The notes: generated from the sequence alone by a model not told the origin. A DNA stretch of 64,000 nucleotides from Laetmonice hystrix (GCA_965235115.1 OZ249442.1:14818001-14882000); one strand, 5' to 3'; positions 21,401 to 26,538 are shown, counted from the first letter of the stretch. Translations and numbers: made by a program.

Positions 21401-24400
21401 TCAAAGTTATAATCGCCATTACAGATGAGGCACATAGTGACAAAGCCAAGGAGAGCATCCGTGCCAAGTGTGTCCAGTACCTTGACCGTGCTGAGAAACT
21501 CAAGCAACATGTCTACAAGAAAGGACCAGAAAAAAAGAAACCAGTCAAAGATACAGACACAGGAGCAGACAAAAAGTGAGCAATATTCAGTCATACTAGT
21601 AGGGAAAACAAGACCCAATCCAGGGCATCAGTCATGTTACAATATTAGTGGCAGTCTATTTCTGTGATTATGGAATCGCAGAATTTACCAAAAAAAATTG
21701 CAGCCACATCTCTGTGTCCAGCCACTCTAGTTCTTGCTAACTGTATATTCACTGCCCATACCTCTGGCCAAGACTGATGTGTATTCAAAGAAAGTACCCC
21801 TCTGCAGTACTGCTGCTTTGTGTATGCATAGACTCTAAAGCTACAGCATGTTTTTACAACATCAAAATGTGGAAACAGAAACAAACTGAATTTTCTAAAG
21901 TTTGGGTAGAAAAAATACAGATTTTCTCATTTTCAATCTGATACATTGGTTCTCTGGCTGTTTAATGTCATGAGTTTGGTAAATTTCTGGTCTGTTTATC
22001 TCCAGGGGAAGTGACAGTGATTCTGATGATGATCCAGAGAAGAAGAAAAGGCAAAACCAGCTTTCAGGTAATTTTCAATTTTTTTCTTTTTTGGGGCCAT
22101 ATTAAATGAATCCCTAAATCATTCTAGTAGAAATAGAGGTTAGCTAAAGATCCAAATACAGTGTTGACTTGGAGAATGCAAGTGTTAAATAAAAACACAA
22201 TAGAGATTTTCCATCTCACGTCCTCAGTTGATCTGTAGATAAATTAGAATTCACCTCTGGTATCTTACTGTGTTTCAGGGGCTATTGTAATGGAGAAACC
22301 CAATGTCAGATGGGATGATGTAGCAGGACTTGAAGGGGCGAAAGAAGCCTTAAAGGAAGCCGTCATTCTGCCCATCAAATTCCCACATCTGTTCACAGGT
22401 GAGTTAGAAACACATACAGTATTCTCAAGTTTTGAAAGTACCCTAGGATTCTGTCTTTGACTCAGTTTGAGGGACTGATGACTGTGAATCTGTCAATGTA
22501 TGTAAAAAGTTCTCCAAAAGTATCCAAATGTCTGATTTTGAAAAGCTTTTAGGGCAGACATTTGGATACATTGCATAATATACATCACAAAGGTAATGTA
22601 GCAAATACTGCAAATCAAATTTGCATAGCATTTGTCTAAGATAGTGGTGTGATTGATTTCTTGTGTGTCACTTGGTTGCCTGAGTTGGTCAGTTACATGT
22701 GACATTCTCTTGCAGGAAAGAGAACTCCATGGAGAGGAATTCTATTATTTGGTGTGAGTATTATTACAAAGGCCATCAGGATATGAGATATAGTGATATA
22801 AGAGCCACCCTTGACAAATTCACTAATTATGTAGGCAATAGTAAGGCACAAAGTGGTTGTGTTTATCAGGGGATGTCCCATATTGTTGTGGAGCTTTGAG
22901 AGCCTATTCTTTGAAAGCATAGACCACTCTAGTACAAAAGACTTTAAACTAATAAAAGGGGGCCTTAACAGAAGATTATTTTCAAGAATAATACCTGAAC
23001 TTGACAGACTGTTTAATTTTGTTTTGCAGCCCCCAGGGACGGGTAAATCTTACTTGGCCAAGGCTGTAGCAACAGAAGCCAATAACTCCACCTTTTTCTC
23101 AGTGTCCTCTTCAGACCTGGTCTCCAAATGGCTAGGTGAAAGTGAGAAGTAAGTTATTTTCCATTCCAGGGAAGGGCCTTCTACTAGAGGAAATTATTTA
23201 ATATTTTACATATAATTATAACCAATTTTTGTGTGTACCTATTTTCCAAGTCCTTACGTTGAAGAAATTAGGAATGGGGTTGTCATTGTTTGTTTTAAAA
23301 TAAGAAATGGAGACAAGCAATACCATACTTCTCTTCATCCCGTGTGTACCACTACCTTTGCAGGTTGGTGAAGAATCTGTTTGAGATGGCAAGGGACAAT
23401 AAACCAAGCATCATCTTCATTGATGAAGTCGACTCTCTCTGTTCATCACGAAGTGACAATGAGTCTGAATCAGCACGACGTATCAAAACAGAATTTCTTG
23501 TACAGATGCAAGGTTAGCCATGATATATTGATTTGACCCCCAAAGTAACAATGTCTTGCCTGATATCTTTAAAATGTGAAGATAAGTTAATAGTTCCTAT
23601 TATTCACAGATCACAGGGAAAAAAAATGTATAAGGTTTCATTTAGCACTGTTTCTTCAACACAGAGGGACCTCAAAGGTCAATCAAGGTCATGCATCTTT
23701 TCAACAGCTCGTATGTCTAGAACTGTTCAAGATAACCACCAGTAGTTTACTATGTGCACTGTGTGGTTATCAAGTGATATTTGAAATGTCAATTTGTGTA
23801 TCGTGTGTTTTTAAATGGACTGTATCTCAAAATATGAAGTAAGCATAGTTTCCGGCAAACTATGTTTCTGTGTCCTTAATTCACGTGTACATAGATGGAG
23901 TGATGTATTGCAGGCGTTGGTAAAGAGAATGAAGGGGTCCTTGTACTCGGTGCCACCAATGTACCTTGGACACTGGATGCTGCCATCCGTAGAAGGTACC
24001 ATCATACAGCGTGCTGTTACACGGTGACAGTTGACACTCGTCTGTACCGTATTAGTTGCTATAACACAGTGCCCTCCTGAACAACAGCTAGCTAGTTGTC
24101 CCAAATACTTCAACAATTAGTCACTTGCTGTATGTGGATTTCTACTTGGCACTGGGCTACGTACTGCAGACTTGGACTTCCCTAGTCAATGAATGCAATG
24201 TGGGCTGGCTTGCATTTTATATCACTGTCAGGAAATGCCTGGATTAGCTGGATACTTCACATTAGGTTTCAAGGATGCCATAATTTTGGAATGCTAAGAG
24301 CCCATACTGCATGGAGATTTAATCCATCTTGAGAGGTGGCCAAACTGCCTTCATGAGTCCTCCACTGAAATGTATCTCAAATTAGTCATGCCAAAAATAT

Positions 24401-26538
24401 GGAATTTCTTAATTACCCCGGTATGTGAACTGTACCCCCACTCGCAAAATTTTGCCACTGTACTAAATGGGTCCTTGGAACCATTTGTTCCAGCTGAAGT
24501 ACTTGAGAACGCTCAGTTTGTGTGATGCACACCATTTACAGTGCCTTGGAACTGGACCCTGGTGTTGTGGTGATTGAGCCATGTCTGAGCTGTGAAGCAG
24601 GGTTGAGAGTTCAGCCTTCAACTCTGACATCCTGGGCACAAGTAGTGTTGTGGCCTCATATTTCATTTCCTCTTGTTGCTGACTGTTGCAGGTGTTGGCA
24701 ATAATAATGATGGTATCTTAGTTCTGGGTGCAACTAACATCCCTTGGGTCCTGGACGCCGCCATACGCAGAAGGTACCTGTAACACCATTCATACTCCAG
24801 GGCCCGGTTCGCAATACTAAGACATCTTGCTTGAGCTTAACATATTTCATATTATTTTTGTTGGATCAATATTTAGATGCCCAAACATACGATTTTTTTT
24901 ATGGTTATATTAATTTCTTCAAGGTGTGGAACAGAGTTCACTTTTGCATAGCAGTACAGCTACATTTTGTTTCTGGCTCTTTTGCTGGAAAACGCCAGCT
25001 AAGCCACGAGAACTTAATTCCCCTTTTTATCTGGCCCATGATGGGGATCAATATAATAAGTATTGATTAGTAAGTACTCCAAACAGTGTATTAAAGGAGG
25101 TTTTCTTCAAAATGATAACTTAATCATAAGAATATTGTCAGTTTTGTTCAAAAGAAATTTTCAGTGAATTACGGTTTTAAATATGAATGCAGAGATATGT
25201 TTGTTGGACCTTTTACCTTTCAGATTTGAGAAGAGGATTTACATCCCACTGCCTGAGGAGCATGCTCGGACCTTCATGTTCAAACTACATCTTGGCACCA
25301 CACCGAACAACTTATCAGAGCAAGACTTCAAGATGCTCGGCCGTTCAACTGACGGTTACTCAGGTGCTGACATCAGCATTGTTGTACGGGATGCGCTCAT
25401 GCAGCCTGTTCGGAAAGTTCAGACAGCCACACACTTTAAACGGGTAAGTCGCAGTTGCCATAAGATTATTCAGACTTCTTGCAGTAGTTTATGAGGCCTA
25501 AAGGCCCAGCCACACAGCCCTTATGACCCGATCGTTGGGCATAAAGTTAAACCAGCGGAGTCTCCGATGGGTAAAGACGGTTCGGTCGGCCCCGTATTTC
25601 ATGGGCCGGTCAGACAAGACGACAACGCAATCATCGGAATGCCAATGGTGCCCCATGCGAAACAGTTGATAAACGACACGTGCAACCTCTGCAGTTTGAC
25701 GCCCACTGTGCACTGCCGACGGAACCGTCGCGTCGTAAATGTTTAACATCTCAACATTCCTGACGCGACAAATCCGTCGGCTGATTTGGCCCAATGTGCG
25801 TCAGCTGCCCCGGCCACACAGACCGATGCATACCAACCCGATCCTCACAGACGATAGGGTCGGTCTGTGTGGCCAGGCCTTTAAACTGAAAGGGTTGGGG
25901 CTTTCAATTTGACCTCTGTGCTTTAGTCGACAGGGATTTATCAAAACTCGTATAAAACTTGACACAACTATTATTGACAGATATGATTTATCGTTTGATG
26001 CCATTTTCTGTAGCATTGAGCAATAACATTAGTTTTCTCACCTTCATATTGCAGGTTCAAGGCCCAAGTCCTAAGGATAAAAACATTACTGTAGATGACC
26101 TCTTGACCCCATGCTCACCTGGTGATCCGGGAGCAGTAGAAATGAACTGGACACAAGTGGATGGCGAGAAACTACTAGAGCCTCTTGTTTCATCTGTGAG
26201 TCCTTCATCCTTAACTAGCCTTGAAGAAGTTTTCATTATACATGTATAATTGATTTTTTTCTCAAGACTTTATTTTGTAGAAGTAAGTAATACATCCTGG
26301 ATAAAAAGACAAGTAACCTTTCATGGAGTTCAGTCATTGTTTTTTATGCGTTTTCTTTGTATGGGCAGTGGAGCAAAATGATTAAAATGCCAAGAGCAAG
26401 TATGTCAAACTCATGGAGTGTTTTATTTTGTTCCAGACTGATATGATGATGTCATTAGAAACATCCAAAGCCACAGTGAATGATGAGGATTTAATGAAGC
26501 TCCGCAAATTCGCAGAGGACTTTGGCCAGGAAGGCTGA
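18468..26538 (+). CDS. VPS4: Vacuolar protein sorting 4 AAA+ ATPase (ESCRT-III disassembly), 436 aa
   Basis: Exons 18468-18482 (MSTLQ), 21134-21245, 21425-21575, 22006-22067, 22279-22398, 22716-22753, 23030-23148, 23364-23512, [23914-23995 or 24692-24773], 25224-25443, 26055-26195, 26437-26538 total 1311 nt. MIT domain, Walker A GPPGTGKS, Walker B IIFIDE, SRH, C-terminal FGQEG. Confidence 0.97.
18959..19005 (+). repeat. 3 x 16-bp tandem repeat in VPS4 intron 1
   Basis: GGTCTC(A/G)GATCTCC(A/G)T repeated. Confidence 0.8.
20284..20297 (-). promoter_or_regulatory. CTCF consensus motif in VPS4 intron 1
   Basis: GCGCCCCCTGGTGG is the reverse complement of CCACCAGGGGGCGC; motif match only. Confidence 0.4.
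23914..23995 (+). CDS. VPS4: VPS4 alternative exon 9a ([27 protein letters not shown])
   Basis: 82 nt, TGCAG|...|GTACC boundaries, phase 1 to phase 2, open frame, paralogous to 24692-24773. Confidence 0.85.
24692..24773 (+). CDS. VPS4: VPS4 alternative exon 9b ([27 protein letters not shown]), canonical-like
   Basis: 82 nt, strong polypyrimidine tract, TGCAG|...|GTACC, same phases as 9a; closer to recalled human VPS4A/B. Confidence 0.92.
25501..25881. mobile_element. About 380-bp MITE in VPS4 intron 10
   Basis: TIRs AAGGCCCAGCCACACAGCCC / rc AAGGCCTGGCCACACAGACC flanked by TA (25499-25500, 25882-25883); superfamily ambiguous (TA, TWA or TTAA target). Confidence 0.75.

Follow-up and report, generated by a model that had tools for sequence, protein, structure and literature searches.

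Tandem copies 9a and 9b of exon 9 in the VPS4 gene of Laetmonice hystrix: a probable pair of mutually exclusive exons in the catalytic core

Does the VPS4 gene of Laetmonice hystrix encode two versions of its ATPase by choosing between two neighboring copies of one coding exon, or is only one of these copies translated? The question is raised by a genomic stretch of 64,000 nucleotides (OZ249442.1:14818001-14882000; hereafter the window, to whose first letter all positions refer), in which the coding region of VPS4, a meiotic-clade AAA ATPase of the ESCRT pathway, extends on the plus strand from ATG to stop (18468..26538) over 12 exon positions, the ninth of which is occupied twice; the protein comprises 436 amino acids with either exon 9. 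The affiliation to VPS4 is evident from the domain content: Pfam searches on single exons revealed an N-terminal MIT domain (E 6e-15), one AAA cassette (3e-10 and, for exon 8, 3e-11), an AAA lid (AAA_lid_3, 4e-10) and the Vps4_C oligomerisation domain (1e-12 and 7e-8). The coding end of exon 1 (MSTLQ; 18468..18482, +) is followed by the MIT-encoding exon 2 (21134..21245, +), which joins exon 3 at 21425; exon 8 (23364..23512, +) carries Walker B, pore loop 2 and a helix ending in VQMQ(G), and exon 10 (25224..25443, +) completes with its first base the junction Arg codon (equivalent to yeast R289) and continues into the lid domain. In the spliced translation, the catalytic motifs are present with 9a as well as with 9b (Walker A GPPGTGKS, Walker B IIFIDE, pore loop KWLGE, sensor-1 GATN and the arginine fingers RRR). 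Neither a third copy of exon 9 nor a duplicate of any other VPS4 exon was found at the locus. The designation as "single-copy VPS4" in an earlier note on this DNA is only partly right: another chromosome (contig C8) carries a divergent paralogue that resembles VPS4 but is altered in residues of sensor-1 and the arginine fingers, and whose exon 9 reads DEDSGVFVMGTSSVPWMLDHAICKR. An origin of 9a from this paralogue was ruled out, as the exon 9 of the latter has diverged much further and the DNA of 9a is matched nowhere else in the genome.

The two copies, 9a (23914..23995, +) and 9b (24692..24773, +), are neighboring exons of 82 nt each that are open in the VPS4 frame, lack stops and share the phases 1 to 2: at entry two bases complete a Gly codon, and the exit is formed by the AG of the Arg codon that is completed by exon 10 at 25224, so that each copy reads (G), 26 residues, (R). 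Their borders are the same (ttgcag|G at the acceptor side, AAG|gtacc at the donor side; GT-AG), and both donors lack the gtragt consensus that most other exon donors of the gene possess. The copies are 71% identical in DNA (58/82) and 78% identical in protein; six of 27 residues are replaced (9a/9b: K/N, E/N, E/D, V/I, V/I, T/V), whereas 22 of the 28 codons, including the split ones, encode the same residue, 13 of them by a synonymously different codon. Recounting thus reproduced the codon numbers of the earlier note, and its coordinates, lengths, phases, TGCAG/GTACC borders and peptides were borne out to the base. By sequence, 9b is the canonical-type and 9a the derived copy, the best PDB matches of 9a being VPS4B/Vps4. 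The splice sites of both copies appear usable; the polypyrimidine fraction upstream of 9a (0.44) is the minimum of the gene, in contrast to the strong tract of 9b (0.72).

Translation of all four exon combinations confirmed the earlier argument that a productive mRNA must hold exactly one copy. The complete VPS4 of 436 residues is obtained with 9a alone or 9b alone; because 82 nt is not a multiple of three, the form with both copies runs into a stop at residue 287, four codons into 9b, and the form with neither at residue 342, inside exon 11. Both premature stops lie upstream of later exon junctions, and such mRNAs would presumably be removed by nonsense-mediated decay. Signs of the other known mechanisms that enforce exclusivity were not found: a steric block between the copies is not to be expected, since the intron separating them (23996..24691, +) measures 696 nt, both copies are of the GT-AG type, and the introns around 9a and 9b contain no docking/selector pairings above chance. 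The intron between the copies is unlike the other flanks, and its complementarities are at chance level only. Five short inverted repeats were detected in the three introns, and in one of them 13 nt at the 9a donor (23993-24005) pair with the interior of 9b (24707-24719); as this number of repeats is about that expected by chance, competing RNA structures were dropped as evidence.

How old is the duplication, and has 9a been kept as coding sequence? A direct-repeat search yielded one family of 93 nt at a spacing of 778 nt, which corresponds to the exon plus 6+5 border bases only; beyond these, the flanks share 24-26% identity, i.e. the random level. Third-codon identity between 9a and 9b (0.35) lies between the values obtained when either copy is compared with the exon 9 of six other animals (0.23-0.50). 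As the introns are unalignable and third-codon identity is as low as against other phyla, the duplication is very old. According to the Nei-Gojobori method, 15 of 22 synonymous but only 9 of 62 non-synonymous sites differ (dS approximately 1.8 and saturated, dN 0.16, dN/dS approximately 0.09). All six replaced positions belong to the 10 (of 27) at which 41 distinct VPS4 sequences show variation (probability by chance 7e-4), each 9a residue is found at the same position in other VPS4s, and the invariant residues (GATN, PW, D and the RR pair) are unbroken in both copies. Both 26-residue segments match solved VPS4 structures with E values of 1e-9 to 5e-9 and are thus no chance open frames; for 9a the VPS4 structures (5e-9) are well ahead of the next AAA family (3e-4). 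The low dN/dS, together with replacements that are restricted to variable positions and to residues seen elsewhere, indicates that 9a was kept as coding sequence; an old tandem duplication with purifying selection on both copies, as proposed before, is therefore supported by dN/dS, saturation and replacement pattern alike.

A second exon 9 was present in none of the six other animal species whose exon 8-exon 10 stretch was fully sampled, among which there is no known close relative of L. hystrix; in a seventh species this stretch was partly sampled. The nearest protein match, P0003, is identical in 64/73 residues of exon 10, and P0016 was the only full-length metazoan representative in a search of representative proteins. 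Against the protein database, the open frame of 9a retrieved only two unrelated fragments, and no 9a-like exon occurred among the 120 matches listed for each of the exon-10 and exon-8 frames (of hundreds), which for the most part are genomic ORFs of vertebrates or of unidentified animals and include none from transcripts of the species itself. Scanning metagenomes with the 9a frame retrieved 29 loci; most of them are AAA genes of prokaryotes or protists, and one (L023) is an animal-like VPS4 with one exon 9. Literature searches on mutually exclusive or tandem exons found no description of alternative core exons in VPS4; an apparent match concerned VPS41.

Four sequencing runs were found, all from one sample, one of which, X4, with 58 Mb of contigs, is RNA-like. 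The contigs of X4, which stem from the same animal, connect exons 1, 2 and 3 with the joint 21245>21425 (GT..AG), and the coding end of exon 1 matches exactly the loose 5' letters of one of them (X4 record 25); these contigs confirm that the gene is expressed and spliced over exons 1-2-3. X4 contigs were seen over exons 1-3 only, those of conserved exons having probably been lost to a human-similarity filter: since X4 contains 90% of the sampled words of exon 10, contigs over this exon were probably filtered out. Among what was displayed, neither 9a nor 9b is joined to exon 8 or exon 10 in any read or contig.

On balance, 9a and 9b, which go back to an ancient tandem duplication of VPS4 exon 9, are probably both working coding exons that are used in a mutually exclusive manner. 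With its canonical sequence and strong 3' splice site, 9b would be the probable default, and 9a, with its weak polypyrimidine tract, a probably regulated minor form of certain tissues or stages. The same tract, which makes the 3' splice site of 9a the weakest in the gene, would also suit a 9a that is a silent relic, no longer or never spliced in this lineage, so that only the 9b protein is made. In line with such a relic, a single exon 9 suffices in six other animals, and the RNA-like contigs, seen on exons 1-3 only with those of the conserved exons probably filtered, provide no support for 9a. However, the open frame, the splice sites, the invariant catalytic residues and the dN/dS of 0.09 have persisted despite saturated synonymous sites and introns, and the six changes are all of kinds tolerated in other VPS4s. 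A mostly unused copy would have decayed: none of 20,000 neutral simulations at 0.45 or more substitutions per site kept the residue changes at six or fewer. A shorter neutral period of 0.1-0.2 substitutions per site still fits the observed differences, and a copy that functioned for long and fell silent lately would be compatible with the sequence statistics. We consider the silent relic unlikely, roughly a one-in-five matter in our judgement.

Clearly less probable is a role of 9a as a regulatory poison exon, which, when joined with 9b, would send frameshifted mRNA into degradation and thereby set the VPS4 level, with no second protein being made. The stop four codons into 9b, well upstream of the later junctions, and a weak and thus regulatable 3' splice site would be appropriate for this role; yet it requires splice sites and a frame-shifting length only, not a protein-like sequence with intact catalytic residues and conservative replacements. 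An assembly artefact, or the collapse of two alleles or gene copies next to each other, can be practically dismissed as the source of the pair; with respect to the misassembly that the earlier note had named as a refutation, the data turned out in favor of a genuine pair. Single contigs of three DNA runs (X1 record 3, X3 record 18, X2 record 12; built by another assembler, all from one sample that is possibly the assembled one) span both copies with 0-1 differences. The DNA of 9a occurs only once in the 627-Mb genome, and 29% of the bases differ between the two copies, whose flanks are unalignable, which is far past allelic difference.

If 9a and 9b are indeed both working exons, the position of the replaced residues within the ATPase becomes of interest. 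Alignment to solved structures equates exon 9 residues 1-26 with yeast Vps4 residues 263-288: the exon starts directly past the equivalent of N261 and holds sensor-1 (N277) and R288, while R289 corresponds to the split junction codon, in agreement with the previous assignment of beta-4/sensor-1 and the arginine-finger region to this segment. The first residue of the loop (9b: N; 9a: K) is aligned to yeast N265. The cryo-EM structure of yeast Vps4 places N265 and R289 at the ATP of the neighboring subunit, and the N261A/N265A exchange reduced oligomerisation and ATPase activity (PMC5520056).

The exon choice would give two proteins that differ in six residues only, distributed over three places. 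The first would be the loop after VQMQ-GVG, NNND with 9b and KENE with 9a, whose initial residue, corresponding to N265, would face the ATP of the neighbor; the loop had been described before as charged, which is correct insofar as KENE is richer in charged residues than NNND, but both have the same net charge (-1). The second would be the start of the beta-4 strand (I in 9b, V in 9a), and the third the surroundings of sensor-1 and the helix towards the arginine fingers, where I and V of 9b are replaced by V and T, respectively, in 9a. A likely effect would be a fine adjustment of the ATP hydrolysis rate or of hexamer stability. The alanine exchanges in yeast (N261A/N265A, R289A) are laboratory loss-of-function mutants, whereas the 9a/9b swap is a natural one from N to K; because K is found at the N265-equivalent position in 6 of the 41 other VPS4 sequences, mild tuning would be more likely than loss of function. 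We put forward only tentatively, and with doubt prevailing, that the exon switch, with the N-to-K swap at the N265 equivalent as its key element besides the residues flanking sensor-1, might alter the subunit face that reads and stimulates the ATP site of the neighbor, so that pure or mixed hexamers might differ in hydrolysis rate or stability.

The mechanism class of mutually exclusive duplicated exons is already well known, and its members are predicted by same length, same phase, homology and adjacency. The VPS4 pair resembles this class in its anatomy (adjacent, homologous exons of equal length and same phase, GT-AG borders, a length not divisible by three) and differs from it in that its exclusive use is predicted from the reading frame. 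A comparable pair within one enzyme gene is formed by exons 6a/6e of COQ-2 in annelids, molluscs, nematodes and flatworms; this pair is reported to switch between ubiquinone and rhodoquinone synthesis and is backed by transcript and functional evidence (PMC7434440), in contrast to the VPS4 pair, which was recognized in genomic DNA and was not found in six other animals. The mutually exclusive exons of muscle myosin heavy chain belong to another protein family and form several clusters with many variants and well-documented expression (PMC3912159). With respect to VPS4 itself, VPS4A and VPS4B of vertebrates likewise provide two versions per organism; these are, however, whole-gene duplicates that differ throughout and are separately transcribed, whereas here six residues of one exon under one promoter are concerned. 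The VPS4B-type sequences (P0016, PDB VPS4B) differ from 9b in the very same loop (GVG-VDND versus GVG-NNND), and the loop of VPS4A is of the NNND type.

VPS4 is the sole ATP-driven motor of the ESCRT membrane-cutting machinery, and how ATP hydrolysis is coordinated between neighboring subunits of its ring is still being worked out. If the proposed exon choice holds true, the natural isoform pair of L. hystrix, differing in six residues of which one is located at the ATP of the neighboring subunit, with the rest flanking sensor-1 and the arginine fingers, would represent an evolution-tested probe of inter-subunit coupling in an AAA motor; exon duplication would then accomplish in this VPS4 what whole-gene duplication into VPS4A and VPS4B does in vertebrates.

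The VPS4 gene was complete on the forward strand of the window: its start codon (ATG at 18468) and stop codon (26536-26538) were placed by frame reading, the exons were mapped by three-frame reading and splice borders, and the map was confirmed by tblastn of the spliced product. Single-exon scans returned the Pfam domains MIT, AAA, AAA_lid_3 and Vps4_C, a set that is the VPS4 architecture. Exon 9 was present in two forward-strand copies of 82 nt, 9a (23914-23995) and 9b (24692-24773), each preceded by ttgcag and followed by gtacc; tblastn of the spliced product revealed neither a third exon 9 copy nor a duplication of any other VPS4 exon. 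The first two bases of either copy complete the Gly codon opened by exon 8 (ending at 23512), and both copies finish with the AG of an Arg codon whose third base opens exon 10 (25224). At the DNA level 58 of 82 bases were identical; the recount of codons (22 of 28 with the same residue, 13 of these synonymously different, and six replacements) reproduced exactly the figures of the earlier note. The repeat search delimited a single 93-nt family, i.e. the exon extended only by its 6 and 5 border bases; past these bases, the 100 nt flanking each side were identical at random level (24% and 26%).

The two copies cannot be alleles, their divergence being far too large. An assembly artefact, named in the earlier note as a reason to abandon the pair, was likewise rejected: 9a DNA was found once in the 627-Mb genome, and Logan contigs of three DNA sequencing runs each ran uninterrupted through the two copies with 0-1 differences (21839-24832 in X1 record 3 and in X3 record 18; 23674-25538 in X2 record 12), although all runs derive from one sample, perhaps that of the assembly, and thus check the assembler and not a second individual. 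Two single-base variants, the synonymous third-position change 25398 C>T in exon 10 (CTC to CTT, Leu) and the intronic 22428 A>G, were seen in contigs of X2 and X3 and were absent from X1, all of the same sample; none was seen inside 9a or 9b in the contigs of the runs.

Several repeats accompany the gene. The intron that separates exon 8 from 9a (intron 8) harbors a very high-copy repeat at 23674-23864 (summed contig depth approximately 25,000; adjoining bins mostly approximately 35-95), at which the contigs of one run break; in contigs of all three DNA runs the stretch 23694-23815 was swapped for 15 other letters, which may reflect a small mobile element insertion polymorphism or other copies of the repeat. 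Further repeat pieces at 24796-24832 (intron 9) and 25584-25965 (intron 10) reached depths of hundreds to thousands; the former recurred in the RNA-like run X4 (75-nt contig, depth 121), so that transcription of this repeat family takes place at some genomic site. Upstream of VPS4, at approximately 15900-17100, long open stretches with recurring peptide-like motifs (...GRPRSE..., ...WNSDLGRP...) in all three forward frames point to a putative tandem or interspersed DNA repeat.

Comparison of 9a and 9b according to Nei-Gojobori gave 15 synonymous differences at 22 sites and 9 non-synonymous differences at 62 sites (dS approximately 1.8, i.e. saturated; dN 0.16; dN/dS 0.09). Since third-codon identity between the copies (0.35) was no higher than when either copy was compared with the exon 9 of six further animals (0.23-0.50), the duplication is too old for dating by exon 9. 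Simulated unconstrained drift yielded six or fewer residue changes in none of 20,000 trials at 0.45 or 0.9 substitutions per site, and in 8% of trials at 0.2. Judged against 41 distinct VPS4 sequences, all invariant residues are retained in 9a and all six replaced positions fall within the 10 of 27 naturally variable ones (chance 7e-4); the 9a residues themselves recur there in other VPS4 proteins (K six times, E three, E ten, V 15, V two and T seven times). Compared with solved structures, 9a alone matched VPS4 four orders of magnitude above any other AAA protein. Taken together, 9a was retained as a coding part of VPS4 throughout most, if not all, of its history; a recent loss of its use would be compatible with the same sequence. 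That the pair is a real, old and constrained duplicate appears highly probable to practically certain, depending on the clause.

The premise of a single-copy VPS4 held only in part: a second, divergent VPS4-like gene resides on another contig of the same genome (C8:8873700-8876310, minus strand; loci L002, L010, L052). It is 50-60% identical, shares the intron positions around exon 9, and its detected exons are all open from the linker to the C-terminus; an MIT-domain exon was not found in the fetched piece. Walker A and Walker B are retained, sensor-1 reads GTSS versus GATN and the arginine-finger stretch AICKR versus AIRRR; the product may act as a weakened or a regulatory subunit. Its exon 9 is single, and this gene was rejected as the source of 9a. 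VPS4 loci of other animals, retrieved with exon 8 and exon 10 ORF fragments or by scanning metagenomes, contained a single exon 9 of the same 82 nt and phases in six species with the exon 8 to 10 stretch fully covered (L017, L018/L019, L021, L022, L023, L053), none of them demonstrably close to this genome; the exon 9 duplication is thus not a general animal feature. Locus L016 showed one exon 9 in its covered part, and the nearest hit, P0003, was identical at 64 of 73 positions in exon 10. In L021 (GCA_029980185.1), the intron after the single exon 9 carries an open frame of 312 residues (8922-9860) that encodes a Transposase_1 domain of the mariner type.

In spliced translation, either exon 9 alone resulted in the full 436-residue VPS4, whereas inclusion of both shifted the frame with a stop four codons into 9b, and omission of both led to a stop within exon 11. 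As later exon junctions follow both stops, mRNAs with both copies or neither would be expected targets of nonsense-mediated decay. Steric exclusion and spliceosome incompatibility do not apply, since the intron between the copies measures 696 nt and both copies are bordered by GT-AG. Complementary intron segments were not more frequent than by chance; 13 nt across the 9a donor (23993-24005) are 92% complementary to 24707-24719 inside 9b, a geometry that would fit a splice-choice helix, of a size expected by chance in 1.7 kb. The pyrimidine fraction of the acceptor region was 0.72 for 9b and 0.44 for 9a, the poorest of the gene, and both donors (AAG|gtacc) differ from the gtragt consensus of most other exons of the gene; from these splice-site features, 9b would be the default and 9a a regulated minor exon. 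X4 (58 Mb of contigs, same sample; on record no run is RNA) contained a contig that links 21245 to 21425 over a GT..AG intron and whose 5' letters are those of exon 1 (18459-18482), so VPS4 is transcribed and spliced in the sampled animal. Sampled words of exon 10 were present in X4 to 90%, yet neither exon 10 nor exon 9 carried an X4 contig in the display, from which conserved-gene contigs resembling human DNA are silently excluded. At the sequence level, the pair conforms to all criteria of mutually exclusive exons from tandem exon duplication, and we consider its actual use as such probable.

In full-length alignment, exon residues 1-26 correspond to yeast Vps4 263-288: position 3 (N in 9b, K in 9a) equals N265, sensor-1 falls on N277, the exon ends with R288, and its junction codon with exon 10 is the arginine finger R289, which bears out the assignment of sensor-1 and the arginine-finger region to this segment. 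In the cryo-EM structure of the ATP-bound yeast hexamer, R289, N261 and N265 of one subunit lie near the ATP of the next; N261A/N265A lowered ATP-dependent oligomerisation and ATPase activity, and R289A nearly abolished both (PMC5520056). Since the N265 equivalent is so placed, the exon swap would change the side of the nucleotide pocket that acts in trans from NNND to KENE. The loop described in the earlier note as charged does change its residues, but its net charge equals that of the NNND version. The swap is further predicted to alter residues by strand beta-4, sensor-1 and the helix toward the fingers (I/V, I/V, V/T); the GVG motif at the exon 9 start presumably corresponds to the motif for inter-subunit signalling in related AAA proteins.

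No account of alternative core exons was found in the literature on VPS4. Mutually exclusive exons by tandem exon duplication are a well-known class, to which 9a/9b probably belongs; working parallels are the exon switch in COQ-2 of annelids, molluscs and helminths (PMC7434440) and the exon clusters of the myosin heavy chain (PMC3912159). At the gene level, the exon pair has its counterpart in the VPS4A/B paralogues of vertebrates. Because lysine is natural at the N265 position in other VPS4 proteins, we expect that its presence in 9a would tune the enzyme rather than cause a loss of function.
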